IMG/VR virus record: IMGVR_UViG_3300017971_000185
Coordinates: 186,001 to 250,000 of that record
DNA length: 64,000 bases
Strand: one strand, 5' to 3'
Of this stretch, positions 17,901 to 47,923 are shown in pieces. The notes below the pieces were generated by a model. The model searched no databases. It was not told where the DNA came from and saw only the letters and a list, made by a program, of their open reading frames with translations. The translations under genes were made by a program, and so were the position numbers. Every line of letters begins with the position of its first letter. Within the stretch, counting starts at the first letter, position 1.

Positions 17901-19869
17901 TGAGGGCGGAACGCTCACGACTCTGACGCAATCTCTCGACTTCGTGGGTGCTGGCGTGACGGCATCGGCGGTTGGTAATGCTGTCACGGTCACGATCCCC
18001 GGAGGGGGAGGCGCGGCTGATCTCGGCACGGTTCTCGGGAACGGCAACACGACCAACGTTCACGACATTGAGTTTACGAACGGTGACCAGATCGTTGGAG
18101 AGGACAACCCAACCGGCAACGGAGGCGACCTTTCGCTCCTCACAGGCAACTCAACCAATGCAGGTTCCCGCAGCGGGAACATCGAGTTGAACATCAATGC
18201 TCCGGGTGCCGGAGGAGCAGCGGGCGACTTCATTCTCAAAGGCCAGCCTGGCGGTGACAACACCACTGGAAATGCGGGAGCGGGATCGGACTTTTCTGTC
18301 GAAACGGGACCAGGCGGTGTGGTCACGGTTTCTGGCGACGGCGGTCGTGGTGGCAACGCTGACTTCATTCTCGGAGATGGTGACGACGGAGCCGGTGGTG
18401 GAGATGGCGGTGAAGGTGGCAACACACGATTCCAATTGGGAATAGGCGGCGCTGGGGCTTCGGCCGGAGACGGCGGTGACTTTGAAGTCTCTGCTGGCGA
18501 TGGCGGAGTGGGCACGGTAGCCAGTGGGGCAGGTGGGGCGGTTCGTTTCATAAGCGGAACGGGTCCTGGTAGCTCGGCAATTGATGCGGGGAATGCTGGG
18601 CCGTTTGAGATCTTCACGGGCAGTGGCGGAACGACCACGAATGCGGGGTCAGATGGAGGAGACGGAGGACCCTGGAATGTTCAGCTTGGTGATGGCGGAG
18701 GAGCCGCGGGAGTCGGTGGTGGCGGGGATGGTGGTTACTTCGGCATTCAGACGGGCGCAGGAGGCTCTACGGACTCTGGGGTGGCCGGTTCTGGCGGGCT
18801 GTGCTCCATCAACCTCGGTGAAGGGGCCGACTCTACAACGGGCACAGGGGGCCTAGGAGGCTTGTTTGATCTTCGGGCGGGGGATGGTGGAAATGCGATC
18901 TCGGCGGGGCCTGGTGGCGCAGCGGGCGGCATGGCGGTCACCCTCGGGGATGGTGGTCAAGGTGTTGGCGGAGGCAGCGCAGGAGGAGCGGCAGGGGACT
19001 TCGTAGTCACGGCCGGCGATGGTGGGGTTGGGACTGGTGGAGCAGCAGGAACCGCAGGCGGAATCATCTCTCTCACGGCAGGGGATGGTGGTACAGGTGG
19101 TCCCGATGGGGCAGGAGGATCTGTTTTCGTTATTGGTGGTGCGGGCGGAGGTAGTGGCGCTCATGGAGATGTCACTGTAGCAACAGCACCACCAAACCCA
19201 CCCTTGTTCGGTGGGGTCGGTGGCGAAATTCAACTTCTCACGTCCAACTTCGCTGCTGGTGGTAACGGGTCTTATGCACGACTGCGAAGCGGGGGTGCTC
19301 TTAATGGAGGACCGATCGAAATCCATGGCGGAACCTCGTCGGTGGGAAACGGAGGGGATGCAACTCTAGAGGCAGGAGCTACAACGCTTGTAGGGGCTTC
19401 TGCTGGCGGCGATGCACATGTGATTGCAGGTGATGCCTCAGACCCAGCCGGTACTGGCGGCAACATCTTCTTGACCCCCGGCCCAGCCACAGGCGGCGGT
19501 ACGCCAGGGACGGTCGTGTTAGACGGTCTCGTAGAGAACGGCAGTGGACCGGGCACTACCCCGACCATTGGGCATCAGCGGAGCAACGCAGCTTCCGCGG
19601 GAGCCGTGCCTGGGTTCCCTGGCATGATCGATCCGACGACCCTTCCACCTGGAAGCTATCCTACATCCTTCATTGTGCCGTTCAACGTGCCTTTTGCCAC
19701 GGCACCGTCAAACATCCAGATCACGCTCACTTCGTTTGGTCTACCAGCGCCCCCTGCCGCGGGGACTGTGGCCATCGTTCACAGTGTCTTGCCCGGATCG
19801 TTTGAGATCGGGTTTGACGCTGCTAGCCCGCAGCCCGCGATGGGTTTCTACTGGGAGGCGTGGCTCTAG
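14902..19869 (+). CDS. Giant Gly-rich fibre-like virion protein (1655 aa)
   Basis: Long GGxGGxxxLxxG repeats, two knob motifs, a central non-repetitive beta-rich domain, and C-terminal VPFNVPFATAP..FEI..GFYWEA typical of fibre C-termini. Confidence 0.72.
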   Translation: MSTTDKIRPGVDANIVEANVVRGHDAILTGNVPEDIQIAASRNDGDDVVGIVTIWNRTDSTTEQVFDLRSGLTFGTAERAQMFVGAIDPTGTLTATAGSLYLSTTPAKLYQNQDGATDWKVISDDLGGETLEETLVLGNTTGDNAIIVSDQPSAGIQGEDKSGGTGGGDLKLRGGSESGLAGNGGDVQVSTGTTAAGNSGSIIGTTAVVTTGGASGLIEWVTGAVTGGGNSGSNTLKSGDVDTGASGAITVGSGDSSGSNGVSGDLTFEAGRTQSDGQGGGIYVYGGSTTPPPVPPIPTFTAGRGGPVIIEAGESSGTVDGPQVSIVGGAGGSGGGDGGNVILSGGPGGGGGSEGEIIGLSNLRADNIKRGTAVPNGVENGNEGDIYQRTAGGFGELYLNTNGTNNGWIKLGASGDFFNSLVKTQWGSVHASMATNFINADGFFDVATFSSAGAVVDRETDEGGPNLRWVVGNGDDAGIHIIAGGGAGALQRQQKFIIGFKFSVDSLDAGYISFLGVSSADLPTMLTNSPLGDWIGLQKIDGVPSTFRFATRGNVGEYIADPLVTFALDEVHYFIIDTTVSDAITFLLLDSALNLVRTATISPVSDNTSPSLTDVLRPVCGIKGTNAVLKTFDFYHFTAVVQGDLNLGGGGGGGSIPTLETVLGSGDFTGSNYIRLTDWDATWGGIIQGEADPPLNVPDGGRVTIAGGATTDLLGTGGDLYLFSGNPAIASANKSGAASLNSGSVLDATNTGGTGDVIVSSGITTGSGISGDLWLLTGTTVTGATGDIKILSGLSGGGNTGNVEILTGNAALAAGNITLTGGNSTAGAGGGIAFQGGDGGGAAGSGGDIIMATGLPDPGFNLNGGNIGLLCTQGAGAGDGGSLAFAAGLGGPGGGDGGSIGLTAGPGTAGVSAGGNIVLTPGSGFGGGADGAVIVNGKLTVTGLIDPTGMVLVNQATIPGGTPAAGSSTLWVRLSDNSLMLTDSGGSDHPVSGSAIETKDEGGTLTTLTQSLDFVGAGVTASAVGNAVTVTIPGGGGAADLGTVLGNGNTTNVHDIEFTNGDQIVGEDNPTGNGGDLSLLTGNSTNAGSRSGNIELNINAPGAGGAAGDFILKGQPGGDNTTGNAGAGSDFSVETGPGGVVTVSGDGGRGGNADFILGDGDDGAGGGDGGEGGNTRFQLGIGGAGASAGDGGDFEVSAGDGGVGTVASGAGGAVRFISGTGPGSSAIDAGNAGPFEIFTGSGGTTTNAGSDGGDGGPWNVQLGDGGGAAGVGGGGDGGYFGIQTGAGGSTDSGVAGSGGLCSINLGEGADSTTGTGGLGGLFDLRAGDGGNAISAGPGGAAGGMAVTLGDGGQGVGGGSAGGAAGDFVVTAGDGGVGTGGAAGTAGGIISLTAGDGGTGGPDGAGGSVFVIGGAGGGSGAHGDVTVATAPPNPPLFGGVGGEIQLLTSNFAAGGNGSYARLRSGGALNGGPIEIHGGTSSVGNGGDATLEAGATTLVGASAGGDAHVIAGDASDPAGTGGNIFLTPGPATGGGTPGTVVLDGLVENGSGPGTTPTIGHQRSNAASAGAVPGFPGMIDPTTLPPGSYPTSFIVPFNVPFATAPSNIQITLTSFGLPAPPAAGTVAIVHSVLPGSFEIGFDAASPQPAMGFYWEAWL

Positions 19870-20827: not shown

Positions 20828-23800
20828 ATGGCCCAGACTCCATTTCGCCAGCCCGGCAAAGACCTTGAGGTAACGGATGGGAACGTCATCACTGGCGCCG
20901 ATGACTCCCAGGGTGGGGACCTTACTCTTGAAGGCGGGACATCCTCTAGCGGGAACAACGACGCGGGCGATGTCGTCATCCGGCCCGGCCTTCCAAATGG
21001 CTCGGGTGCTCGCGGCATCGTCAATGTCACGAACAATGGGGGTGCTGATACAGATCCAATTCTTCAACTGACTTCCGAGACGGGAGCAAATGTTGAGGAT
21101 AGTCGCTTTTTCGTAGGGACACGAGATCCCCACACAAACGTAACTGGCAACCCTGGTGATGTCTACATCACACACAACGGCACCAGTAGTACGGTCAGCG
21201 TAAACACCGGGGCCGGGGACGCTAACACGACTTGGACAGATCTGGCGGGTGGAGGGACTGGCGGAGCAGATCCGGGCATAGAGGGGGTTCTTTGGGAAGA
21301 CATCCAGTTTTACCTCGACGCTGGGGACCGTAACTCATATCCCGGTTCCGGCTCGACCATAACGGATCTGATCGCTAGCAAGAGTTGCACGCTGTATTTC
21401 GTGACTATCACGGATAGTCACATCAACTTCAACGGCGTAAGCTCCTACCTCGACACCGGCACCCTGTCCGCTGCGCTCGTGAACCTCTTCGAAACGGGCG
21501 GGACGGTCGCCGCGTGGGTTCGTGCGGAATCAGATGGGGGAGGGAACGCGGGGCGTGTGGTGTCAACGACCGGTTCCGCAGACACGAAGGGCTGGTACTT
21601 GGATGTTAACGATGAGTCGTCCGGGCTTGTTCGTTTCAGATTTGAGCAGAACAGAGGCACGACAGACACGGTCTACACGACGTTCAGGACGGTCCCGATC
21701 AACGAGTGGGCTCATGTCGTCATCACCTACGACGGCAGCGACCCCGCGACGAAATTTCCGATCGCCTACATCAACGGTGAGCTAGTTTCCTGGGATTCAG
21801 AGACGGCGGGCTCTGGTGCCATTACGAGTGACTCAGGCGAGATCCTCTTCATCGGAAATCGGTGGGGCGCCGCTAGGACGTGGGACGGCGACATCGATCT
21901 GTTCCAACTTTGGGACCGTGTTTTGTCCGCCGATGAAGTCCGTCAGCTTTATCGAGTAACCGGCGAGGACCGATTCCGGCCTAGTTTGCTCGGAGACGCT
22001 GCTTCGACTTCTACTGGCGACGCTCCTGATGTCGAAATCAAGGCAGGCCCAGGAGGAAGTACGAGCGGTGCTGGAGGAGGCATCGCGCTGACGGCAGGAA
22101 CCACGACCGCCGGCTCGGGGGGAGGCATCACGATCACGGCCCAAGACGGCACGAGCGGAGCCGGAGACGTGATCCTCAATTCGGGGACGACTTCCTCTAG
22201 CGGTGATGGAGGAATCATCTCGTTACGTCCGGGCGTTGGCGCGGGGACAAACGACGGTTATGTCGACATTGATCCCGACTGGACCGGGGATGCGGATCCT
22301 CTCCTCCAATTCACGGTCACGGGTTCTAACGTTGACAACAACACTCAGATATTCACCGGGAACCGAAACCCCGATGGCTTCGTCACGGGAGAGTGTGGTT
22401 CCCTATACCTTCGCGGCAACACCGGGTCGAGCACGCTTTACGTCAATACGAGTGGGGCAAGCCCTGGGAGCACGTGGACGGAAATCGGTGCAGGGGGCTC
22501 TGGAGCGAGCGCGGGCATCGAAGGCGTTATCTGGGGCAACAACCAATTCTACCTCGATGCCGGCGACCGCAACAGTTACGCCGGATCGGGTAACACGTGG
22601 ACGGACATCGTTGGTTCTCGCGCCGCAACGATGACCAACCAGACCATCACTGATGGTCACATCATCTGGAACGCCAGTACGACCACGGCAACGTTCACTT
22701 CCGACTCCTCCATAGAAGACATTTGGAATGGGGGCGGTACGCTCATTGCTTGGGTTCGGGCAGATAGTTTTGGTGAAAGTAGCGTCGGTCGCATCGCGAG
22801 CACGGCGAACGCAGGTAACACCATAGGATGGTACGCAGGTGTTACGTCCGCTAGCGGCAACACCTGGAAGCTCTACTTCCGTCAGAATTTCGACAACACG
22901 GATGGCGAATGGCGCACGACCTCGACGGTAAACCTCAATGAGTGGTTGTTCTTTGCCATCACCTACGACTCTAGCTCTGCCAGTAACGAACCTACGCTCT
23001 ACATCAACACGGTTCTGGACACGACCGACGAGATAACCAACCCGATTGGCGATTACGGTTCTGAATCGGGAGCGGACTTGGACATTGGTCGTGCTGGAGA
23101 CGGCTCAGGAACGTGGGGTGGCGCGATCGAAATTGTCATGCTCTATGACACGGAGTTGTCTGACGATGCGATCCGTCAGATCTACAGTGTCACGGGGCAA
23201 GATCGTTTGCGGCCGAGTTTGATGGGCGCTCCCACGACGGACGCTAGTCGACCACCACAACCCATTCAAATTATTGCGGCTGATGGTGGGGCTACAGCCA
23301 GTGACGGAGGCGCGGTCGAAATCTCGTCCGGGGCTAGCACGACTGGTGCGGGGGGTGCTGTTTCGGTCACGGGTGGCGCGTCGGAAGGCGGCACCACGGG
23401 AGGAGACATATCGATCACAGGTGGAGACGTTGCAAGCACTAACTACAGTGCAGGTGATGTCACCATTAAGGGCGGCGATCTGGACTATTCGTCCGCGATT
23501 TCCCCAAACACGGGCGGAGACGTCACCCTCGAAAGTGGTTCGTATAGCGGGACAGGTTCGGCGCAGCCAGGCGGAATCACCATCAAGACGGGGACGGGAG
23601 GAACCAACAGCGCAGCCGCTCCCGATCTTCTTCTTCAAGTTACATCCTATGCTGGAAGCAGTGCCCTTGGAGACATCATCCTTCAAGGAGGAGACAACAC
23701 CGGGACAGGCGCAGCAGGGGGAATTCAGATTCTTGCCGGAGACGCTAGTGGTGATCCGGGTGGGGGTGTCACAATCACGGCGGGCGATGGGACCGGGGTA

Positions 23801-25345
23801 GGCGCGGTTGGGGGAGCCCTTAATCTGACTTCAGGCGGCGCGAGTGCGAGTTATACGGGCACGATCAACATTGATGTTCCGGCACAGTCTGCATCAGGCA
23901 GAGGCACGGGTGACATCAACATAACCATTGGAGACACTGCCTCCAATTACGGCTCGAATCCTTCGGGCGACATCAGTCTCACGGCAGGCGATCATACGGG
24001 CACGACGGGAACCGCTCAGGCTTCCAGCATCTTTCTCACAGCCGGGGATCATGCGGGAAATGAGAACAATGCGCCACCGGGCGATATCACCCTGAGCGCA
24101 GGAGATCAAACCGGAAGTGGTCGGGGTGCTGCTGGCGGCATCTACATTTGGGCTGGAGACAAGACAGGCGGCAGCCACAGTACTACGGCGGGTGGTCAGG
24201 TAGACATCGATGCTGGCGAGGGCAGTGGGGTAGGCCCAGGAGGGGCCGTCAGCATCACTGGCGGTTTAGCTGGCTCAACTGGAACCGGCGGCGGAGTTGA
24301 CATTGATGCAGGAGGATCTGGTACGGGAGCGACAGGTACGGGGGGAACGGTTGCCATCGATGGTGGGACCTGTAATGCGACGAATGGCGCAGGAGGCCCC
24401 GTCACCATCACGTCCGGTGCCGGTGCGGGGACGGGGAATGCTGGAGCCCTTGCGCTTAGCGGCAATGACGGAGGAGCCACGTCGGGTACAGGTGGAGATG
24501 CATCTCTGGGCGGCGGTGAAGGCGGCGGCACGGGTAGGGGAGGCAACCTTTCTCTTTTCTCGGGAACGGGTGGTGCGAACGGTGCGGGCGGGACGGTGTC
24601 GATCAACGCCGGGAGTGGCGGAGCTTCCGCGGGAGCATCGGGGACGATCACGATTTCCGGTGGCGATGGAGGCTCGGCGACAGTTGCAGGGGGAGCCGTT
24701 ACCTTTGAAGGAGGGGCTGGTAACACGACCGGAGCAGGGGGTCTTGCAACGGTTCAAGGAGGCACAGCAGGAGCTTCGGGGAATGGCGGCAGCGTAGCGA
24801 TTACGGCGCAAGATGGTGCTACGAATGGGGACGGTGGCAGTGTCACTGCGACCGCTGGTGGGGGTGCTGGGACCGGTGCCGATGGGAATGTCTCTGCCTT
24901 CGCGGACGACGACGGGTCCTTCCAGCATCGCACGCAGACGACGGGGTTCGCTGGAACGCAGTGCGACCACAAGACACTCGCGCTTCAAGCCTCTACGTCT
25001 GGCACGACTGTGTTAGCCGTGCTCGGGGTTCTGAGCACGGACGGCTTGAACATGAAATTCGACGTAAAATGTACGGGTGTCCGCGACTCCAACGACTCCG
25101 ATATCATCTCGATTTTCGCTGTGCAGACGGCGTATCGGGTTGGCGGTACGGTGTTTCTCTTGACGGCTCATGTCGATCCGACTTCGGCTCCCGGCAAGCA
25201 GACGAATGGTACGATTCCCTGGACGAACATCCAACTGGCCATCAACGGAGACAACATTGAGCTTCAAGCCACGGCCACGGCTGCCACGGGCGACTGGAAT
25301 TTCTCGATAGAGTGGACGCGACAGCTTGGCGGCTACTCCTCGTAA
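20828..25345 (+). CDS. Fibre-like virion protein with two LamG/concanavalin-A-like domains (1505 aa)
   Basis: Two copies of QFYLDAGDRNSYxGSGxTxTD...GGT..AWVRA..NEW.....TYD..LYING..WxGxI.....DR/TxLSxDxxRQxY (about 21300-21960 and 22540-23200), Gly-rich repeats and two knob motifs. Confidence 0.82.
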   Translation: MAQTPFRQPGKDLEVTDGNVITGADDSQGGDLTLEGGTSSSGNNDAGDVVIRPGLPNGSGARGIVNVTNNGGADTDPILQLTSETGANVEDSRFFVGTRDPHTNVTGNPGDVYITHNGTSSTVSVNTGAGDANTTWTDLAGGGTGGADPGIEGVLWEDIQFYLDAGDRNSYPGSGSTITDLIASKSCTLYFVTITDSHINFNGVSSYLDTGTLSAALVNLFETGGTVAAWVRAESDGGGNAGRVVSTTGSADTKGWYLDVNDESSGLVRFRFEQNRGTTDTVYTTFRTVPINEWAHVVITYDGSDPATKFPIAYINGELVSWDSETAGSGAITSDSGEILFIGNRWGAARTWDGDIDLFQLWDRVLSADEVRQLYRVTGEDRFRPSLLGDAASTSTGDAPDVEIKAGPGGSTSGAGGGIALTAGTTTAGSGGGITITAQDGTSGAGDVILNSGTTSSSGDGGIISLRPGVGAGTNDGYVDIDPDWTGDADPLLQFTVTGSNVDNNTQIFTGNRNPDGFVTGECGSLYLRGNTGSSTLYVNTSGASPGSTWTEIGAGGSGASAGIEGVIWGNNQFYLDAGDRNSYAGSGNTWTDIVGSRAATMTNQTITDGHIIWNASTTTATFTSDSSIEDIWNGGGTLIAWVRADSFGESSVGRIASTANAGNTIGWYAGVTSASGNTWKLYFRQNFDNTDGEWRTTSTVNLNEWLFFAITYDSSSASNEPTLYINTVLDTTDEITNPIGDYGSESGADLDIGRAGDGSGTWGGAIEIVMLYDTELSDDAIRQIYSVTGQDRLRPSLMGAPTTDASRPPQPIQIIAADGGATASDGGAVEISSGASTTGAGGAVSVTGGASEGGTTGGDISITGGDVASTNYSAGDVTIKGGDLDYSSAISPNTGGDVTLESGSYSGTGSAQPGGITIKTGTGGTNSAAAPDLLLQVTSYAGSSALGDIILQGGDNTGTGAAGGIQILAGDASGDPGGGVTITAGDGTGVGAVGGALNLTSGGASASYTGTINIDVPAQSASGRGTGDINITIGDTASNYGSNPSGDISLTAGDHTGTTGTAQASSIFLTAGDHAGNENNAPPGDITLSAGDQTGSGRGAAGGIYIWAGDKTGGSHSTTAGGQVDIDAGEGSGVGPGGAVSITGGLAGSTGTGGGVDIDAGGSGTGATGTGGTVAIDGGTCNATNGAGGPVTITSGAGAGTGNAGALALSGNDGGATSGTGGDASLGGGEGGGTGRGGNLSLFSGTGGANGAGGTVSINAGSGGASAGASGTITISGGDGGSATVAGGAVTFEGGAGNTTGAGGLATVQGGTAGASGNGGSVAITAQDGATNGDGGSVTATAGGGAGTGADGNVSAFADDDGSFQHRTQTTGFAGTQCDHKTLALQASTSGTTVLAVLGVLSTDGLNMKFDVKCTGVRDSNDSDIISIFAVQTAYRVGGTVFLLTAHVDPTSAPGKQTNGTIPWTNIQLAINGDNIELQATATAATGDWNFSIEWTRQLGGYSS

Positions 25346-25634: not shown

Positions 25635-25904
25635 ATGGCGTTCACAAACTTCGAGAAACAGATGATCGACATCATTGATCAGCGTTGTCGTCGCGGATCG
25701 ACGGACGCCGCGAAGCGTACCGTGTACCAAGGCTACGAGGCGACTTTGCTCAAGGGCGATGAGGCCGAAGTGCAGGCGCTCATTGCTACTTTTATTGCCG
25801 ATGAGGGCATGGTACAAGAGACCACGAACCAGATCACCGTTCTCAATACCAAGGTCACTGAGTTGAATACGCTCAAGACCGACATGGCTGCCTACATCGC
25901 GTGA
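25635..25904 (+). CDS. Small helical protein, paralog of 25357-25623
   Basis: MAFTNFEKQM..QRCRRG..LI..FI..LKTDMAAYI; GGAG RBS. Confidence 0.65.
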   Translation: MAFTNFEKQMIDIIDQRCRRGSTDAAKRTVYQGYEATLLKGDEAEVQALIATFIADEGMVQETTNQITVLNTKVTELNTLKTDMAAYIA

Positions 25905-26431
25905 TTACTCGTCTCGCCATTTTCGACTTCGACGGCACGCTGTTCAATGCCCCCGAAATGCCGGGCGCTTCCGACAGTTGGTACGACAGTGTAGAGTCGT
26001 TGTCACCTCCCTGCGTGCCGCAGCGGCCGACTCCCGATTGGTATATCGGGTCGACCAAGAGTGCGTTCCAGAAGGTCAAGGGCGATCCCAAGACGCATGT
26101 TGCAGTCGTGACGGGTCGCGTCGAGCCTTTGCGAGCACGGGTCGCTGAGCTTCTGCGCATGGGTGGTTTAGTCCCCGATGACCTGTTTCTGCGAAGCGGA
26201 GGCGTCACGTTGCGCTACAAAATGGCGACTCTCCGATACTTGACGAACGCACTCCGCACACTCCAGACCATCGAAATCTGGGAAGACCACAAGCACAACC
26301 TAGAGCACATGGTGCGTTACGGAAACAAGATGGGGTACTCTTGCATACCTCACTTGGTTCGAGTGAAGCGGCGCGTTTGTCCGTCTCCTGTGAAAGTCGC
26401 TGAGCGAGCATTGCGCGCAAAGTTGCTATAG
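25901..26431 (+). CDS. HAD-superfamily phosphatase, Swiss-Army-Knife RNA-repair-like type
   Basis: Motif I IFDFDGTLF.P, motif II VVTGR, DLFLR, and motif IV IWED. C-terminal tag PVKVAERAL. Confidence 0.75.
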   Translation: MITRLAIFDFDGTLFNAPEMPGASDSWYDSVESLSPPCVPQRPTPDWYIGSTKSAFQKVKGDPKTHVAVVTGRVEPLRARVAELLRMGGLVPDDLFLRSGGVTLRYKMATLRYLTNALRTLQTIEIWEDHKHNLEHMVRYGNKMGYSCIPHLVRVKRRVCPSPVKVAERALRAKLL

Positions 26432-32352: not shown

Positions 32353-32942
32353 CCGAGCCTCGTCCCATAGGCACAGTGCTTGAGCACCCCTGTCCAGACT
32401 GCGGCGGGGAGATGGTGCTTCGTACCAGCCGCTACGGCCTGTTCTACGGGTGCAAGGCATTCCCCAAGTGTCAGGCGACGCACGGGGCTCACAAGGACGG
32501 ACGCCCCCTCGGCATTCCCGCGGACTCGGACACCAAGCGGGCTCGCATAACCGCCCACAACGTGTTCGATCGCATCTGGAAAGACAAGTACATGCGACGC
32601 GGCGATGCCTATGCCTGGATGGCTGAGCAGATGGGGATGGAGAAAGATGAGGCGCACATCGGTCGCTTCGACATGGAGCAGTGCGAGAAGCTGATCGCGA
32701 TCGTGGACGCCTACTTTGAGAGCAAGCCCAAGAAGGTGAACCCGTACAAGGGTGCTCCACTCCGCAAGATCGTTGACGTGAAGCTGGATGACAACTACCA
32801 CCGCAGCGGGTGGTACACGGCTGTCTTGGAGTGTGGCCACGAAGTCCAGCGACTAGGTTACTACCGTAAGGCTGACAAAGGGCCGCGTGGAGTCAAGACG
32901 AAACGCTGCTACTGCCTCCAGTGCCGAGAGCCTTCGGTGTGA
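32349..32942 (+). CDS. Zinc-finger protein (topoisomerase C4-like / DUF3268-like)
   Basis: CPDCGGEMVLR..FYGC..FPKC..THGAH..GRPLG.PA..R..AH..FD.IW..R.DAY.W.A....HIG.FD.EQC. Confidence 0.75.
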   Translation: MTEPRPIGTVLEHPCPDCGGEMVLRTSRYGLFYGCKAFPKCQATHGAHKDGRPLGIPADSDTKRARITAHNVFDRIWKDKYMRRGDAYAWMAEQMGMEKDEAHIGRFDMEQCEKLIAIVDAYFESKPKKVNPYKGAPLRKIVDVKLDDNYHRSGWYTAVLECGHEVQRLGYYRKADKGPRGVKTKRCYCLQCREPSV

Positions 32943-33352
32943 GTGACGACGCTGACATGGTTCTCGTCTCTCGTCTGCGGAAGCATGCCGATCCGTTCTA
33001 TGTTTTGGGATGGCCCGGAAATCCACCCACGTTGGTCGAGATCAAGCGACAAAAGCCATCGAGGTTTCGTGCCATAGCTCGACGTTCGTTTGCGACGCGA
33101 ACGCGGTACGACTACGGGCGAATTGCGTACTTTGTGCAACAACTGGAACAGGGCTGTGAGATCGAACCGATCATGGTGGATTGCTTCTGTGACGGGGGCC
33201 GCATCTATCCAGAAGCGGTAATCCTAGATGGCTGCCATCGCTTCTGCGCCCACGTTCTGCTGCGAAAACGGCGTATTCCGATCTTTTTCGGAGGCCGCGT
33301 GGATCTGCTCGAATGGCTGCGTGGTGAGCGTCGGGAGTGCCCCATGGAGTAA
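32939..33352 (+). CDS. ParB/Sulfiredoxin-like domain protein
   Basis: IEPIMVD...ILDGCHRF. GTGA coupling at 32939. Confidence 0.6.
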   Translation: MSDDADMVLVSRLRKHADPFYVLGWPGNPPTLVEIKRQKPSRFRAIARRSFATRTRYDYGRIAYFVQQLEQGCEIEPIMVDCFCDGGRIYPEAVILDGCHRFCAHVLLRKRRIPIFFGGRVDLLEWLRGERRECPME

Positions 33353-37762: not shown

Positions 37763-38002
37763 GTGGCGCTGCCTGCTGACGTTCGGCGGCTCTTAGCTGA
37801 GGTCGAGCGTCGGCGTCAGGCGAGACTGGAGCGTATTCGCTTCCAGAACAACAACCGTCAGTATGGTCGCTCGATCTACGGAGACTTCACCTACTATCCG
37901 AGTCAGATCGAGCCAGAGCACCATCTCAACCGGGGCATCTTGGGGCTAGACAAGATTCTCAGCGGGGTTACTCCGTGGCCTCGTTTCCCGACAATCCCAT
38001 GA
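37763..38002 (+). CDS. Small hypothetical protein
   Basis: GTG start after GGGAG. Stop overlaps the next ATG. Confidence 0.55.
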   Translation: MALPADVRRLLAEVERRRQARLERIRFQNNNRQYGRSIYGDFTYYPSQIEPEHHLNRGILGLDKILSGVTPWPRFPTIP

Positions 38003-38136
38003 GCGCGAGCGCACAACGAGTTGCTTCCCGATACCTGCAAGATGCTCGTGTGGATCACTACGAGGTCGAGAAGTGGCTTGAGGAGGCTGGGGTGAAACCG
38101 GAAATCGCTGCTCCGTCCAAGACGGACGGCCAATGA
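37999..38136 (+). CDS. 45-aa protein beginning with tag MSASAQRVASRYL
   Basis: Read by eye. ATGA overlaps at both ends. Confidence 0.65.
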   Translation: MSASAQRVASRYLQDARVDHYEVEKWLEEAGVKPEIAAPSKTDGQ

Positions 38137-38384
38137 CGCTGATGGAGCAGGGAAAGAGGGCATCCATGAAGCGAACAGCAATCGTTAAGAAGCATCCCGA
38201 ACGCGGGGTTTGGTGCCTATTCGATTCTGAGGGTAAGAAGGCGCTCAACTGTTTCAAGAATCGGTACAAGGACAAGAAGCCGCCTCAAGAGGCTATCGAG
38301 CGGGCAGAGCGCATCGTGCAATTCTACAAACACCAGGCTAAGGACATGGCGGTTCGGGTCGCAGCGAGATGGCGGGGCGAATGA
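38133..38384 (+). CDS. Small protein with phage head-associated-type motif and C-terminal RVAARW tag
   Basis: IVKK....WCLF...GKK..CF......AxERxVQFYKH resembles a short motif seen in phage head-morphogenesis genes (recalled). Confidence 0.6.
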   Translation: MTLMEQGKRASMKRTAIVKKHPERGVWCLFDSEGKKALNCFKNRYKDKKPPQEAIERAERIVQFYKHQAKDMAVRVAARWRGE

Positions 38385-38810
38385 CGGCGTCAGCACAGCG
38401 CGTGGCACATGCTCATCTTCTCCGCACGGGAGCCAAGGCTCTCAGCGGTAACGCGATTCGGTTGGAAGCAAGACATCAAGAAGGAGGCTGACCAGATCAC
38501 GAGAGAGATTCGCGATGGGTTTGTCAGGAAGAACACGATGAAGCTGAGTGCCATCGTGACCGGGAAAGGCAACCTGAAGAACATCGAAGTCCTGAGTTGG
38601 GCACGTAGCAACTTTGAAGGCGATATGCTGTTCACGTTCAAGGACGGATCGAGTTTCGAGGTACGCAACAAGACCGTGACCAAGATGTCGGTCAAGGGCC
38701 GGTGGTTCTCGCAGTACCCGACGACGTTCCACAAGGTAGTCATGCCGGACGGCAAGAAGATGCCTTCTCCGTCTGAGAAGCGCATGGTCCAGGTATTCGC
38801 GGCAGTGTGA
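38381..38810 (+). pseudogene. Frame-disrupted gene: tag-bearing start in one frame, conserved body in +1 frame
   Basis: ATG 38381 (ATGA overlap) gives MTASAQRVAHAHLLRTGAK, stop at 38491. The +1 frame (38409-38810) carries IRDGFVRKN..KGNLK..FEGD..F.F.DGS.F.V.N..FSQYPTTFH.VV.PDG. Confidence 0.55.
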
Positions 38811-41593
38811 TGGGTCGGCCGAAGTACATCGGGATCTTTCTCACGCCTCAGAGTAGGCGGGCGCTCCTGCGCACCTATCCGCCCGTCCATCCCACTGTCT
38901 ACGCCGATCACGTCACGGTGATCTACGATCCCACCGATGCCGACTTGGAGAAGGTCGAATTGGGAGAGATCGTCACGGTCAAGCCGGTAGCTCATCTGGA
39001 GGACGAAAAGGCCCAGGTGTTGAGGGTGAGCATTCCGTCCTACCTGGCTCGGCTCACCAACCGGGTGCCGCACATCACAATCTCTACGGCTCGCGGTGTT
39101 GCTCCCGTGTATGCGGGCGAGCTAGCCAAGTCGCACCACACCATGATCGCCCCGAAGCCAGGCAACTACACGGGCATCGTGGACGTGGACAAGCGTAGCC
39201 ATCCGGTGCGAACGAGGATGTTCCCGCTGGCCGCTGCTCCCAAGCACTACAAGATCGATCAGGGCGACGTTCGCAAGAAGACGCGCCGTGACAAGAAGCA
39301 GGAGCTAGAGGAGGCGAAAGACCTTGGTTTCTATTCGTACACGGTGATGAAGGTCGTTCCCATCAAGCAGGTCAAGACTCCGCCGGTCTGGAACCAAGGG
39401 CGTATCGACAGGATCAAGAAGGGGCTCGCGTCTGGGAAAGCCTTTCCGCCCATCTCTCTTGCGGGGAAGCGTCCTCCCTATGAGATCAGTGACGGCATCC
39501 ATCGGACCAACGCGAGTATCGACGCTGGCTACACGCACATCCCAGCGTACTTCACGGTGCTCGTAGAGCGCCCCGATCTCTACGAAGAGCCCGAGAAGGA
39601 GAAGCCCAAGCTACGGCCAGGTACTTGGGTCAAGATGCGCGCGTCTCGGGACGGTTTCGATTGGGCGGTTGTGATCGAGTACGTGGGTCCTCGCGTGTGG
39701 AAGGGAGTCAAGCGTCACTTGTACGGTCTCGTAGCGGGCGATACGAACAAGTCCGACTTCATCGGAGACTGGATGGACTCCGAGTTTGATCCCGTGCGGG
39801 AAGGACAAGTACCGAGGAAGGTGCGTGAGACGATTCTGGCAGACCCGTTTGCTGATCATCTTCCGCAGCGACGTGTTGCTGCTCGCCATCTCATCGCTCG
39901 TGACTATTTCGAGATAGGCGACATCATCTTGTACGGGAAGTACAAGAACAAAAAAGCACGGATTGTGGCGTGGGGCAAGGACCACAAGGGAAACCCCACT
40001 GTCGAGATTGAGCCCATCCCCAAGGGCCGCAAGAAGAACAAGACCCTCGGCCTGTTCCGCATCTGGCACGCGCTCCCGCCAGAGGAGCGGAAGAAGGAAG
40101 CGCAGGTTCGGACGGCGGAATTTTCTCCCAATTGGGATTGGCCCAACGTCCTGAAGAATGTGGCCATCTTCAACCAAATCCACAAGACGGTGAAGGGATG
40201 GACGCGCCTGAGCGACAAGGACCGAGTACCGGCGCTCCAGAAAGAAAAGCCGTTCATCGGACAACTGAAGAAGGATGTCGCGGGCGGAACCTTCCCTGGT
40301 CAATGGGAAGCAGGTTTGGCTGAGTGGCTCTATCAGTGGTGGGGATTCGAGTGCCCCAAGAAAGGCACTTCTGATCTGCTTCATCATGAGCTTTCGGTTC
40401 TGTATCGTCATGTTGCCATCGAGCCCAACAACTATTTACTCAAGAAGGATGTCGAAAATACAGCACGAGTGTTAGACACGTACTCCAAGGAGGTCAACGA
40501 CTGTCTCAAGCAAGCCGGGCCAGCGCGTCTGACCTACTCGGGGTTCAAGGTCTGGAATCCGCAGCGCATGCCCGACAAGATGATGCGCAAGCTGTTGAGC
40601 GGCGTCGATCACATCATGGCGATCTTCCGCAAACGAGGGATGGAGAAGGCGCTCACGAAAGGCGTCAAGGACATCCTCGTTCGCAAGTGGACTAGCAACG
40701 ATGGAAAGTATGTTGCCTGGTACTTCTCCCGTGAGCGCCGCATCGTCCTGACCGATGCTGTTCTCAAACCCGGCGGTGGTCGGCTCATGGATCGCTGGAT
40801 CTCCGAAGTGTTCCTCCATGAGTTTGGGCATCATGTCCACATGACGTACCTCCATCCCAACGCTAAGAAGGAATGGGATGCCGGGTGGAGTCCTGTTGAG
40901 TCGGCACGGGAGAAGGTCGAGCAAGAATTCAAGATCACCGGGAAGGACCGAAGGCGGTTCTTCGATCTCATCGAACGGAATGATTGGAGTCCGTCGAAAG
41001 CGGCACGAAAGCTCAAGGGCTTGGACAAGCTACGGTTCATGGCGTGGCTGCGCAACCCTGGTTTGGGAGAGCCCTTGATTACACCTAAGATTGTTCGGTT
41101 GACGCGTCGAGGGAAGGACGTGTTTGATTTCTTGCGGGACCCAGAGGGGCATTGGCGTCAACAACACCCTGGAGACCTGCTCAGTCATCTCCAATATGAG
41201 TCGAAGGAGCAGCAGAGAGCGGAAGAGGATGCTTATGTGGCAAAGCAAGTAGCTCAGAAGCTCCGCCGCCTTCGCAACGATGTTTTGTCTCTCGATTGGG
41301 AAGGCGCAGACAAGATTCCCCGAGCGTTGCAAGACGAGATTCGCAAAGAGGACAAGAGCGTAGACGCTGCGATAGATGCTTTGGAAGTCCCCACGGATTA
41401 TGCGAGAACGAATGAGATGGAGGACTTTGCCGAGTCTTTTGTTGCCTTCGTGGCGAACCCGGCAAAGCTCTCGGACCAGGCCAAGTTCCGCATGCAGCGT
41501 GCTCTCAGCCTCTCCGGGCTCTACGGCAAGCCGATTATGAGGCTGGCTGAGCGGGTCGCTCAGACCTGGCGTCGAAGGCAGGCCGCAGCCTAG
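38807..41593 (+). CDS. Multidomain (polyvalent-type) protein: 2H phosphoesterase + ParB/Srx-like + SH3-like + HExxH zincin metallopeptidase
   Basis: HVT (ADHVTV) and HIT (VPHITI) 2H pair; PPISL..YEISDGIHR; VFLHEFGHHVH plus DYARTNEMEDFAESF. Tags RRVAARHL (internal) and ERVAQTW (C-terminal). Confidence 0.78.
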   Translation: MMGRPKYIGIFLTPQSRRALLRTYPPVHPTVYADHVTVIYDPTDADLEKVELGEIVTVKPVAHLEDEKAQVLRVSIPSYLARLTNRVPHITISTARGVAPVYAGELAKSHHTMIAPKPGNYTGIVDVDKRSHPVRTRMFPLAAAPKHYKIDQGDVRKKTRRDKKQELEEAKDLGFYSYTVMKVVPIKQVKTPPVWNQGRIDRIKKGLASGKAFPPISLAGKRPPYEISDGIHRTNASIDAGYTHIPAYFTVLVERPDLYEEPEKEKPKLRPGTWVKMRASRDGFDWAVVIEYVGPRVWKGVKRHLYGLVAGDTNKSDFIGDWMDSEFDPVREGQVPRKVRETILADPFADHLPQRRVAARHLIARDYFEIGDIILYGKYKNKKARIVAWGKDHKGNPTVEIEPIPKGRKKNKTLGLFRIWHALPPEERKKEAQVRTAEFSPNWDWPNVLKNVAIFNQIHKTVKGWTRLSDKDRVPALQKEKPFIGQLKKDVAGGTFPGQWEAGLAEWLYQWWGFECPKKGTSDLLHHELSVLYRHVAIEPNNYLLKKDVENTARVLDTYSKEVNDCLKQAGPARLTYSGFKVWNPQRMPDKMMRKLLSGVDHIMAIFRKRGMEKALTKGVKDILVRKWTSNDGKYVAWYFSRERRIVLTDAVLKPGGGRLMDRWISEVFLHEFGHHVHMTYLHPNAKKEWDAGWSPVESAREKVEQEFKITGKDRRRFFDLIERNDWSPSKAARKLKGLDKLRFMAWLRNPGLGEPLITPKIVRLTRRGKDVFDFLRDPEGHWRQQHPGDLLSHLQYESKEQQRAEEDAYVAKQVAQKLRRLRNDVLSLDWEGADKIPRALQDEIRKEDKSVDAAIDALEVPTDYARTNEMEDFAESFVAFVANPAKLSDQAKFRMQRALSLSGLYGKPIMRLAERVAQTWRRRQAAA

Positions 41594-42938: not shown

Positions 42939-43613
42939 ATGCTGAAGCCGCAGGACATCGTGCATGTAGGAGGGACGCTGACCGCCGCTAGCGTGTTGGC
43001 TGCCTACCACCAAGGAGTGTTTCCTTGGTTCTCGCACGATGGCAGCGACGTGCTTTGGTGGTCGCCAGATCCTCGATTCGTGCTCGACGTGAACGAGGTA
43101 CACAGAGGGCGCACCGTTCGGAAAGCGCTCAAGAAGCTCGACTTCACGATCGACGCTGAGTTTGACCAAGTGATACAGGAGTGTGCCGACAAGCGCTATG
43201 CAGCCAGGTCTGCGATGGGAACCGATCGGACCGACACTTGGATCACTCCCCGGATGTTGAAGGTGTACCGGAAGCTCTATCGAGAAGGCTACGCGCACAG
43301 CGTCGAGGCGTGGAAGGATGGCGATCTAGTAGGTGGTCTTTACGGTCTGTGCCTGGGCAACGTGTTCTTTGGCGAGTCCATGTTTGCGCACATGCCCAAT
43401 GCGTCCAAGGCGGCTCTTGTGTTCCTTTGCGATAAGCTGAAGGAAGCGGGTGTCGGAAGGATCGATTGTCAGATGGAGACTCCGCTGATGCGCTACATGG
43501 GAGCCAAATTTGTCAGTCGGGCGCAGTTTCGAGATGGTCTCTTGTTGGGCTTGCTCACCAAGCCCACGCTCCGAGGAAAGTGGTCTGTAGATGGGTTGCC
43601 AGACGCAGAGTGA
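42939..43613 (+). CDS. aat: Leucyl/phenylalanyl-tRNA--protein transferase
   Basis: LAAYHQGVFPW, WWSPDPR, F.QVI..CA, TWIT, AHSVEAW...LVGGLYG...G.VFFGESMF...NASKAAL, IDCQM.T. Lacks the usual short N-terminal extension. Confidence 0.95.
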   Translation: MLKPQDIVHVGGTLTAASVLAAYHQGVFPWFSHDGSDVLWWSPDPRFVLDVNEVHRGRTVRKALKKLDFTIDAEFDQVIQECADKRYAARSAMGTDRTDTWITPRMLKVYRKLYREGYAHSVEAWKDGDLVGGLYGLCLGNVFFGESMFAHMPNASKAALVFLCDKLKEAGVGRIDCQMETPLMRYMGAKFVSRAQFRDGLLLGLLTKPTLRGKWSVDGLPDAE

Positions 43614-46533: not shown

Positions 46534-46977
46534 GTGCGCAAACCGCACAAAGGCACCTTACGAGCACTCGCCAAACGATTCCGGGCTTGGCTCGTCACGC
46601 TTCCTCAGATCGCCTCTTTCGATGAGGATCTCTGTGGGGCGTGTGCGATTGCTTCGGATGGTCTGGCTCGCTTTCTTCGTAAAGAAGGTTTCGACGCTTG
46701 GTTTGTCGAGGGCCAGTACGTTCCTTGCGCCAACAGCACTCGGTCAGAGGACTTTTACGGTGCCGAGACCAACCATTGTTGGGTCGAGGTTGGTCGGAAG
46801 TGGATCGTGGACATCACTGCTAGGCAGTACAGTGGGCGATTCCCCGAGGTCTACATTGTGCCCACAGAGCATGAGGACTATCATAGATTCCGGCGAGGGC
46901 CGTATGCTCTTCGATGCGTGCGGCGGGAGTGGCCGAAAGACCACCATCCACTCGGTCGAAAGCTACGCATCAGGTAG
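46534..46977 (+). CDS. Papain/transglutaminase-like Cys-His-Asp protein
   Basis: LCGACAIAS ... NHCWVEV ... IVDITARQY. Start set at GTG 46534 after GAGGGA. Confidence 0.62.
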   Translation: MRKPHKGTLRALAKRFRAWLVTLPQIASFDEDLCGACAIASDGLARFLRKEGFDAWFVEGQYVPCANSTRSEDFYGAETNHCWVEVGRKWIVDITARQYSGRFPEVYIVPTEHEDYHRFRRGPYALRCVRREWPKDHHPLGRKLRIR

Positions 46978-46981
46978 GAGT

Positions 46982-47923
46982 ATGACTGAGATTTACATGA
47001 TGGCTGGCGTGCCGGGTTCGGGCAAGAGCACGGAAGTCAAGAAGTTGCCGCCGCACGTTTACCTGAGCCGGGACAAGGAAGGCGGCAAGGTTTTGAGCTT
47101 GCTTCCGAAAATGCATAAGGCGATTGCGGACGGGGCCGAGATCATCGTGCTCGACTGTACTTTCCTTTTGCCTGAGCACCGTGAGCCCTTTCTTCAAGCC
47201 GCGGAAAAGGCTCAGGTGCCGGTTCATCTCAAGTTTCTCGATGTCAGTAAGGAACAGGCTCAATTCAACTTGTGCTGGCGCATGTGCGAGCGCTACGGGC
47301 ACGTGCTGCGGTCCGAAGAGATGGACGAGTACAAGCACGATCCAAACATGTTCCCGCCGACTGTTCTGTTCGGATGGTTCAAGAAAATGGTGCGGCCTCA
47401 GTATGCTGAGGGTTTCGATTCGGTCGAGGTCATCAAGATCGGGCGCTGGCCTTTGCCTTCTGAATTCAAGAACAAGGCGTTCATCGTGGATTACGACGGG
47501 ACGGTACGGGAGACCAAGAGCGGAGAGATCTACCCGACTGATCCCTCCGACGTGCGAGCACTCCCACAGGCGGCTGAGAAACTCCAGAAGATAGCCAAGG
47601 AAGGAAGGCTGTTGCTTGGAGCGAGCAATCAGTCTGGTGTCGCCAAGGGTCTTCTGACCATGGAGACGGCCAGGGCATGTTTCGAGGAGGCCAATCGCCA
47701 GCTTGGCGTAGACATCGAGTATGCCTTCGACTACAGTCGGTCTGGGCCGATCACTTCCTGGCACCGAAAGCCCATGCCGGGAATCGGGGTAGACTTCATC
47801 TGGAAGCATCGGCTGGACCCGAGCCAGTGTGTTTTTGTGGGCGACATGACTTCGGACGAGACCTTCGCCCAGCGATGCGGTTTCCAGTTTGAGTGGGCAA
47901 AGGATTTCTTCGGACATGAATGA
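46982..47923 (+). CDS. Bifunctional polynucleotide 5'-kinase / 3'-phosphatase (P-loop kinase + HAD IIIA)
   Basis: MAGVPGSGKST (Walker A), VLDCT, and HAD motifs VDYDGT, SNQSGV, RKPMPG, FVGD..SD..FA. Confidence 0.88.
   Translation: MTEIYMMAGVPGSGKSTEVKKLPPHVYLSRDKEGGKVLSLLPKMHKAIADGAEIIVLDCTFLLPEHREPFLQAAEKAQVPVHLKFLDVSKEQAQFNLCWRMCERYGHVLRSEEMDEYKHDPNMFPPTVLFGWFKKMVRPQYAEGFDSVEVIKIGRWPLPSEFKNKAFIVDYDGTVRETKSGEIYPTDPSDVRALPQAAEKLQKIAKEGRLLLGASNQSGVAKGLLTMETARACFEEANRQLGVDIEYAFDYSRSGPITSWHRKPMPGIGVDFIWKHRLDPSQCVFVGDMTSDETFAQRCGFQFEWAKDFFGHE

Follow-up and report, generated by a model that had tools for sequence, protein, structure and literature searches.

A modular polyvalent-type protein of an uncultivated huge phage, with 2H phosphoesterase, ParB/Srx, and zincin domains and a tag at its module junctions

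A phage is believed to deploy polyvalent proteins as its first weapons. To our knowledge, almost none of them have been characterised, and none from huge phages of 0.5 Mb. 2H and ParB domains are listed components of the polyvalent proteins of phages and conjugative elements (Iyer et al. 2017, PMC5512222). Their 2H domains have been proposed to degrade signalling nucleotides, and the roles discussed for their zincins are polyprotein processing and host-directed endopeptidase activity (PMC5512222). The closest characterised analogue of the protein described here is DdrB of phage P1, which carries a ParB domain and a C-terminal zincin. DdrB belongs to the Dar anti-restriction system and is processed, packaged, and co-injected (PMC5512222, PMC12810830). 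RNA-end healing has been proposed as a role of jumbo-phage 2H enzymes (PMC7824862). The present gene lies at 38807–41593 (+) of a 64,000-nucleotide stretch (the window), which comprises bases 186001–250000 of a single IMG/VR virus record of 497,194 bp (IMGVR_UViG_3300017971_000185). The record has a CheckV completeness of 94 % and a GC content of about 0.58, and the element carrying the gene is an uncultivated huge phage of roughly 0.5 Mb.

The open reading frame (ORF) has no stops or frame changes and gives 928 aa counted from the GTG at 38807, as a first-pass annotation of the window had it. The true start is probably the ATG at 38810, one codon later, giving a gene of 38810..41593 (+) and 927 aa, because this ATG overlaps the upstream TGA as TGATG, a database copy (P0002) has 927 aa, and all homologues begin with MG. 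Amino acid numbers are counted from 38807 throughout. The protein comprises a 2H phosphoesterase domain, a ParB/Srx-fold domain, two small β-barrels, and a zincin metallopeptidase, an architecture that can be regarded as very probably correct. The first-pass annotation had proposed the same three enzyme types, and family profiles and predicted folds agree with it; the motifs lie where it had placed them, and their core residues are invariant in 6, 15, and 46 sequences, respectively. As far as the sequence tells, the catalytic signatures of the 2H esterase, the ParB/Srx domain, and the gluzincin are all intact.

Module order and mobility

The protein is of the polyvalent type, with multiple domains whose modules are independently mobile among related phages. 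The polyvalent label, given already in the first-pass annotation, holds because the modules occur alone or in other combinations among relatives. Direct family scans of the whole protein were nearly silent, and the modules were therefore analysed from homologues. The whole-protein Pfam scan returned only a weak tRNA_lig_CPD match, and PHROGs, PDB sequences, and a tblastn search of 50,697 GenBank phage records gave zero matches. An exhaustive search at E ≤ 1e-3 found 1241 relatives, most of which match aa 545–920 only; some match aa 143–352 only, and a few aa 5–144 only. A local hidden Markov model (HMM) for each module was run on 155 retrieved proteins and 29 loci. Domain boundaries, for which structure prediction had been recommended, are delimited by two confident AlphaFold models built with family alignments, with a predicted local distance difference test score (pLDDT) of 87.8 for aa 1–440 and 89.6 for aa 430–928.

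Every module was found in several architectures, alone or recombined. Some zincins stand alone at about 470 aa, some are encoded by two or three genes in tandem, and others are embedded in proteins of up to 2952 aa. The cassette of ParB domain plus barrel also stands alone in proteins of 187–265 aa, and the small barrel is placed after the zincin in P0005, P0013, P0027, and P0040. A search for stand-alone 2H relatives yielded one protein. The homologues P0008 and P0004 lack ParB and consist of 2H domain, barrel, and zincin, with a short peptide motif, (R/K)-V-A-x-R-(Y/W/F), between 2H domain and barrel. This motif is called the junction tag below. In the alignment, the tag of P0008 and P0004 stands directly at the 2H-end position where the present protein has a linker and the ParB cassette; the cassette is inserted exactly between the 2H end and the tag preceding the barrel. 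The join site is a disordered linker (aa 131–149, 39197..39253, +) with pLDDT < 50 at aa 133–144. The IMG/VR relatives are mostly on viral contigs of 200–512 kb. Representative prokaryote genomes contain no full-length relative, only fragments matching the EDFAE helix of the zincin, and no part of the protein has a paralogue in its own genome.

A chimeric assembly, or a fusion of genes by sequencing error, is a very improbable origin of this architecture. The source is metagenome-derived, and small ORFs upstream of the gene look rearranged. However, the identical 927-aa protein (P0002) occurs on 12 contigs, the longest of 527,654 bp, and P0003 from another sample, which is 74–77 % identical, has the four modules in the same order, which argues that the fusion is not an assembly artefact. 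The frame is also uninterrupted, and the confidently modelled domains are joined by short linkers.

The enzymatic domains and the barrels

The 2H phosphoesterase domain (aa 3–130, 38813..39196, +) is of the CNPase / tRNA-ligase cyclic phosphodiesterase (CPD) type according to structure comparison and Pfam. Its first HxT motif, H35-V-T37 (38909..38917, +), opens the model strand E35–40, and the second, H89-I-T91 (39071..39079, +), which continues as IST, opens the strand E89–94. H35, T37, H89, and T91 are invariant in all six homologues of the N-terminal domain. The domain model (pLDDT about 90 at aa 1–100) superposes on the catalytic domain of CNPase over 129 residues with a root-mean-square deviation of 2.3–2.4 Å and Z 13.4, as an overlay of whole domains with both motifs on β-strands. 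The kinase-CPD structure of the fungal tRNA ligase Trl1 (6u05) superposes with Z 10.9. The top matches among AFDB Swiss-Prot models are the tRNA-ligase CPDs of S. pombe and Arabidopsis (E 1.4e-4), followed by CNPase, while the top matches to the 2H range in the viral library BFVD are a Cafeteria roenbergensis virus (CroV) protein and a Marseillevirus 'RNA ligase', which are Trl1-like. The Pfam family tRNA_lig_CPD (PF08302) is matched by 6/6 family members at E ≤ 1, with a best E of 9.6e-8, and one of them also matches 2H-SAK. The protein's own sequence reaches 18.7 bits (E 0.0013) against a curated cut-off of 23 bits, and homologue P0008 reaches 29.3 bits. Searching PDB with the 2H family profile gave no true matches, and phmmer of the P0008 N-terminus against PDB gave none.

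CNPase and CPD enzymes open 2′,3′-cyclic phosphates to 2′-phosphates, and Tpt1 removes such 2′-phosphates. Judged on the models, the 2H domain is nearer to these cyclic-phosphate end-healing enzymes than to Acb1, the phage anti-CBASS nuclease with which the first-pass annotation had compared it. That analogy gives way in the rankings, where CNPase, tRNA-ligase CPD, and the giant-virus 'RNA ligase' proteins all stand above Acb1. The Acb1 of an Erwinia jumbo phage appears in BFVD at rank 27 (E 6.1e-4, TM by target 0.51). No Acb1 is among the best 50 PDB structure matches (down to Z 8.4), and the Pfam search of the family members gave tRNA_lig_CPD and 2H-SAK and no Acb1 family match. Degradation of signalling nucleotides in the manner of Acb1 is nevertheless the main rival and a possible activity, because the Erwinia match is structurally significant, the domain, at about 125 aa, equals Acb1 in compactness, and such degradation has been proposed for polyvalent 2H domains (PMC5512222). 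In its full form, this rival would have the domain destroy the cyclic-oligonucleotide signals of CBASS, type III CRISPR, or Pycsar as part of a pre-packaged, injected anti-defence cocktail, the pre-packaging having been proposed in the first-pass annotation. The packaged and injected P1 DdrB, with its ParB domain and MPTase, speaks for it (PMC5512222, PMC12810830). The RNA-repair genes of the genome point elsewhere, and family searches located no head genes that would go with packaging. The full form is therefore considered rather unlikely.

The ParB/Srx-fold domain (aa 150–262, 39254..39592, +) is recognised by its family profile, Pfam ParB_N, and fold. The family profile finds SbnI in PDB with E 2e-8, and ParB and Noc at about 1e-5. 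ParB_N is matched in 10/15 family members (best E 1.8e-7), and the protein's own sequence alone gave no Pfam match for this domain. Over aa 153–255, the best fold match is free serine kinase with Z 10.0, and Noc, sulfiredoxin, and ParB with CTP follow with Z 8.4–9.0. The phosphate-binding signature of the ParB/Srx fold, D229-G-I-H-R233 (39491..39505, +), aligns with DGVHR of SbnI; among 15 ParB-module sequences, G-I-H-R is invariant and D nearly so. The Pfam family ddrB-ParB was not listed at E ≤ 1 for any of the 15 members, for which ParB_N alone appeared. The ParB/Srx unit is most likely an NTP-dependent enzyme or switch, such as a nuclease, kinase, or NTPase, given that CTPase clamps, serine kinases, and nucleases are among its relatives. 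A second small ParB-like ORF of 143 aa occurs in the window at 32921–33352 (+), with the motif D-G-C-H-R and a weak match to the ParB-module HMM (E 9.7e-5).

The SH3-like element of the first-pass annotation is present, but it consists of two separate small β-barrels. The first is a Tudor/SH3-like barrel (aa 263–336, 39593..39814, +; model strands E274–330) that travels with the ParB domain and is present in 16/18 proteins matching the ParB module. The second is a basic, lysine-rich KOW/SH3-like barrel (aa 366–420, 39902..40066, +) with matches to Spt5 KOW domains. It occurs in 12 proteins at differing positions, and it is 60–70 % identical between proteins that are otherwise 30–40 % alike. 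Among its structure-atlas neighbours are a phage cluster labelled 'putative KOW domain' and Tudor-knot, with TM 0.59–0.62. SAWADEE and SETDB1 tandem-Tudor structures in AFDB Swiss-Prot give matches that span aa 260–438.

The zincin module (aa 443–915) begins with a four-helix bundle (aa 443–570, 40133..40516, +; model helices H16–139). The bundle gives generic four-helix-bundle structure matches alone (Z 9–11), and its N-terminal part (aa 438–514) is detected in 35 relatives. The metallopeptidase core follows (aa 571–915, 40517..41551, +), as supported by structure and family profile. It contains H671-E-F-G-H675 (40817..40831, +), comprising two zinc ligands and the catalytic Glu and aligned to HEFGH of anthrax lethal factor (LF). 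It also contains Y865-A-R-T-N-E-M-E872-D-F-A-E876 (41399..41434, +), comprising a candidate third zinc ligand, E872, and a candidate catalytic Tyr and aligned to Y-G-R-T-N-E-A-E-F-F-A-E of LF. In 46 zincin-module sequences, H671, E672, H675, and E872-D-F-A are invariant and Y865 is nearly invariant. The HExxH motif lies on model helix 664–681, and E872 on helix 870–883. The two are 201 residues apart, versus 49 in LF, and the family therefore has a conserved insert of about 150 residues.

LF (1yqy) is the best peptidase structure match, with Z 10.5 over 172 residues at 20 % identity, and the second zincin match is the Bacteroides zinc peptidase 4l7a with Z 8.8. LF is also the best hit of the family profile in PDB, with both the HEFGH and the Y..E motifs aligned, at an E of 0.12–1.4 across LF chains that is not significant alone. 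Pfam gave sub-threshold matches to several zincin families, including ATLF with E 0.028 or weaker in 10/46 members, and no MPTase-PolyVal match in the zincin family members. The meaningful Foldseek matches are zincins only, yet with E ≥ 0.39, and the AFDB fold clusters gave only assorted weak zincin matches with E ≥ 0.01. Structure-atlas neighbours of the zincin carry M90, ATLF, and MA_2, and they include phage clusters with LPD1 and MuF domains, in keeping with the polyvalent label. The zincin is classed here as a new family that is absent from Pfam, with an LF-like metal site, and not as an M34 member.

Two or three zincin genes of this family stand in tandem on related viral contigs (loci L008, L010, L011, L020, and L028), which suggests rapid duplication and divergence. 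The zincin might be the effector of the protein, acting as an LF-like endopeptidase on host proteins, for instance factors of defence or translation, with the other modules as accessories. Its metal-site signature matches that of LF, a substrate-specific endopeptidase, and the size and variability of the family, together with its frequent tandem paralogues (L008, L010, L020, L028), are typical of arms-race effectors. Iyer et al. also allow such a role (PMC5512222). However, the zincin stays in place as the hub amid changing partners, and housekeeping or processing fits this at least as well. An effector role at the centre of the protein is thus regarded as a minor, rather improbable alternative.

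The junction tag

The fuller consensus of the junction tag is small/hydrophobic-x-(R/K)-V-A-(A/S)-R-(Y/W/F)-L-A-A. The strict pattern has 58 occurrences in the homologue set against 2.1 ± 1.4 in shuffles, although part of these are homologous positions flanking the zincin, so that the count overstates their independence. Of the 58, 44 coincide with the end of a protein or with a module border as set by the HMMs, and about 20 come directly after the conserved zincin C-terminus. Applied to the genome of the phage itself, a position-specific matrix (PSSM) gave 19 matches in 13 proteins, while shuffles gave 0–1 and reversed sequences 4. Of these matches, 13 are within 30 residues of a terminus, where 24 % would be expected (P = 6e-5). 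The loci of relatives have 24 tag matches against at most 1 in shuffles. That the tagged proteins are mere paralogues was rejected, as blastp among the 13 gave short zincin motifs only. A recombination linker at the DNA level was also rejected. The codons and flanks of the tag vary freely between copies in one genome, and the constraint is therefore on the peptide and not on a recombination site.

In the present protein, the tag R356-V-A-A-R-H361 (39872–39889; PSSM 24.8) lies in a linker helix between the two barrels (aa 353–365, 39863..39901, +; pLDDT about 65), and the motif is likewise found at the 2H/barrel junction of P0008. A weaker copy, R-V-A-Q-T-W (PSSM 15.8), is in the C-terminal tail (41552..41590, +), on helix 480–498 of the C-terminal model. 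Both models show the tag as a moderately confident helix, with pLDDT of about 58–73. Three small ORFs immediately upstream of the gene also carry the tag. These are a 53-aa ORF (37975..38136, +) with the N-terminal tag Q-R-V-A-S-R-Y-L, an 83-aa ORF (38133..38384, +) with the C-terminal tag V-R-V-A-A-R-W, and a 40-aa ORF in another frame (38369–38491, +) with the tag-like N-terminus M-A-G-R-M-T-A-S-A-Q-R-V-A-H. Elsewhere in the window, tags are at the C-terminal ends of the ORFs 2080–2925 and 25901–26431, the latter weak and tag-like. A topoisomerase-IB protein beside P0007 (locus L001) has an N-terminal tag; its gene is directly upstream of that zincin protein.

Two further giant polyvalent proteins of the genome have tags between their modules, at 450981–455513 (1510 aa) and 455504–458551 (1015 aa). 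They carry the LF-like zincin motifs HEMGHH and HELGHR, with ...EE-x-FCEA. In the 1510-aa protein, a PolyA_pol/CCA nucleotidyltransferase domain is present as well, and Pfam LigT_PEase gives a weak 2H match that stays below the cut-off (E 0.006).

Short terminal peptides on unrelated proteins are known as addresses to the interior of HK97-fold shells, namely the capsid-targeting sequence (CTS) of T4 and the cargo-loading peptides of encapsulins. Their sequences are unrelated to the junction tag, which also occurs internally and at either terminus, and the resemblance is one of analogy only. A word search of PMC5512222 gave no mention of the tag, and it did not surface in one literature search. 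Analysis of its positions points to an address or docking peptide as the most likely role, perhaps combined with processing as for the CTS of T4. It appears to be more than a leftover cleavage site because it is kept at the extreme ends of stand-alone proteins. In a more specific and tentative form, the tag would be an undescribed address tag of a huge-phage lineage that sorts unrelated proteins, at least three of them zincin-bearing polyvalents, most plausibly into the capsid for co-injection, with the LF-like zincins trimming or separating the cargo at or near the tags. If the tag is such an address signal, the injected proteome of uncultivated huge phages could be read from sequence. A complex prediction of the zincin module with a tag peptide (aa 338–370) scored 0.00, which counts neither for nor against binding.

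The tag may instead be a protease recognition element in a small, unpackaged polyprotein that is made after infection and contains cytoplasmic modules for RNA-end healing and nucleotide metabolism, which the zincin merely separates. In keeping with this, the gene stands among non-structural genes (deoxyribosyltransferase-like, FHA, Aat, PNKP), the tags are exactly between modules here and in the two other zincin-bearing giants, and the tags that follow the zincin C-terminus do so immediately. However, tags are also found at the extreme termini of stand-alone proteins, where cutting removes few residues, and both models give the tag as a helix and not as an extended strand. This polyprotein reading is therefore possible but doubtful.

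Genomic context and comparison with described systems

The neighbours of the gene encode an endolysin, DUF7768 (deoxyribosyltransferase-like), FHA, Aat, and PNKP. A 133-aa ORF (38409..38810, +) is translationally coupled to the gene by the TGATG overlap. It matches only the C-terminal 107 aa of a larger gene in the syntenic relative L002 (6605–7999; 451 aa on record, 464 aa by ORF call), which precedes the gene of P0008. Together with the out-of-frame tag-bearing start upstream, this suggests a deletion or frameshift remnant. Synteny with L002 covers DUF7768, two small genes, the partner gene that lies upstream, the gene of the polyvalent protein, and the FHA gene.

Several genes of RNA repair are found in the genome. 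A PNKP-like protein is encoded 5 kb downstream (46622–47923, +) and consists of an AAA_33 kinase, a PNK3P/HAD phosphatase, and an N-terminal extension of about 120 aa without a family. The 176-aa ORF at 25901–26431 (+) matches HAD_SAK_1 with E 1.6e-5 and 25.2 bits (cut-off 25.6). HAD_SAK_1 is the HAD domain of the 'Swiss Army Knife' RNA-repair proteins. A Tpt1/KptA RNA 2′-phosphotransferase is encoded at genome positions 369099–369602 (E 2.2e-49), and a CCA/poly(A) nucleotidyltransferase is present as the PolyA_pol domain of the 1510-aa giant. Near Tpt1, among the neighbours at 376261–378482, an ADP-ribosylglycohydrolase (E 2.4e-58) and a deoxyribosyltransferase-like/NUDIX fusion form an NAD/ADP-ribose cluster.

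RNA-end healing is favoured for the 2H domain because its nearest relatives open cyclic phosphates and because the genome has PNKP, Tpt1, CCA/poly(A) nucleotidyltransferase, and HAD_SAK. The domain would open 2′,3′-cyclic phosphate ends of RNA cut by host ribonucleases, such as anticodon nucleases, or related cyclic-phosphate nucleotides. The adjacent basic barrel may hold the nucleic acid for it, and it would act beside the phage PNKP, Tpt1, and CCA/poly(A) nucleotidyltransferase. The zincin could free the modules by linker cleavage or cut host proteins, and the tag would assign a set of at least 13 of the phage's proteins to a common fate, either capsid loading or processing. The overall model, a polyvalent multi-enzyme conflict protein of four mobile cassettes with tagged junctions and with functions as proposed, is considered modestly probable.

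Several points weigh against this model. The protein's own sequence is under the Pfam thresholds for all three enzyme families, and the assignments come from family profiles and predicted folds. Acb1 remains a detectable structural relative of the 2H domain, and the 58 tags are not all independent. The neighbourhood is not a head-assembly module. In the family searches run, no head, portal, terminase, capsid, or protease gene was found near the gene or genome-wide, which leaves packaging unsupported. Terminase_6N, Gp23, and Peptidase_S77 were not found in the genome, and the positive controls for Gp23 and Peptidase_S77 were also silent; divergence may have put the lineage's structural genes beyond detection. 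Tpt1 adjoins the ADP-ribose enzymes and may serve another purpose. RNA ligases of the Rnl2 or RtcB type were not found in the genome, which leaves a gap in the proposed repair pathway. A search for Rnl1-type ligases was uninformative, with no match to its positive controls, and no Trl1-type ligase was found.

A leucyl/phenylalanyl-tRNA-protein transferase, Aat, is encoded two genes downstream (42939–43613, +; Pfam E 1.3e-62). Aat adds Leu or Phe to an N-terminal Arg or Lys. The first residue of the tag is always Arg or Lys, and a cut just before the tag would therefore yield an Aat substrate. ClpS and ClpP are not encoded by the phage.

Three giant ORFs are found in the first part of the window, at 6620–14251 (2543 aa), 14902–19869 (1655 aa), and 20828–25345 (1505 aa), all on the + strand. 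Neither of the first two matched Pfam or PHROGs, the PHROGs search being uninformative for giants. The 1505-aa ORF contains a pair of Laminin_G_3 (concanavalin-like) domains, and its product may be a fibre or adhesin. Three further large proteins are encoded at genome positions 458548–467778 (L040) and 447475–450942. One of 1523 aa has a eukaryotic-type topoisomerase IB core (E 4.8e-24), one of 1371 aa combines Hint/intein with LAGLIDADG domains, and one of 1155 aa shows an intein signal that is weaker.

When compared to CNPase and the CPDs of Trl1 and AtRNL, the 2H domain shares whole-domain superposition (Z 13.4 and 10.9) and the Pfam family tRNA_lig_CPD. It differs in its length of about 125 aa versus about 200 and is not fused to a ligase or kinase. 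Through the gene, a cyclic phosphodiesterase of the CNPase/Trl1 type is connected with the RNA-repair enzymes of a phage, namely PNKP, Tpt1, and CCA/poly(A) nucleotidyltransferase. Acb1 has in common with the domain the 2H fold, small size, phage origin, and detectable structural similarity. However, it ranks under the CPD/CNPase group in every search, and it has no sequence-family link to the domain. The zincin resembles anthrax LF (M34, Pfam ATLF) in that HEFGH and Y-x-R-T-N-E-x-E-x-F-A-E-x-F align motif for motif. In contrast, it has no PA-binding or VIP2-like domain and stands in a phage context, and the resemblance is one of active site and not of membership.

Like P1 DdrB, the protein has a ParB-superfamily domain upstream of a C-terminal zincin in one phage polypeptide. 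Its ParB domain is similar to ParB_N, SbnI, and SerK and not to the DdrB subfamily; the protein also adds the 2H domain and two barrels. Like the polyvalent proteins of Iyer et al. (PMC5512222), it has unrelated enzymatic domains in one polypeptide around a zincin hub, with the domains shuffled. It differs from them in having no Pfam MPTase-PolyVal or ddrB-ParB match and in lacking MuF, portal, and any further domain or neighbour linked to the virion. The family of its zincin is distinct and uncurated and features a four-helix bundle and an insert of 150 aa, and the junctions of the protein are tagged. The gene is a clean modular example of a polyvalent protein, with three enzyme types whose catalytic signatures are intact as read from their motifs. 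If the tag is an address or processing signal, polyvalent packaging and self-cutting by the protein's own zincin, both of them inferences of long standing, would become sequence-readable, testable predictions. Four features set it apart from the proteins of Iyer et al. and DdrB, namely the absence of a virion-linked domain or neighbour, the CNPase/Trl1-type 2H domain, the zincin family outside Pfam, and the junction tag.

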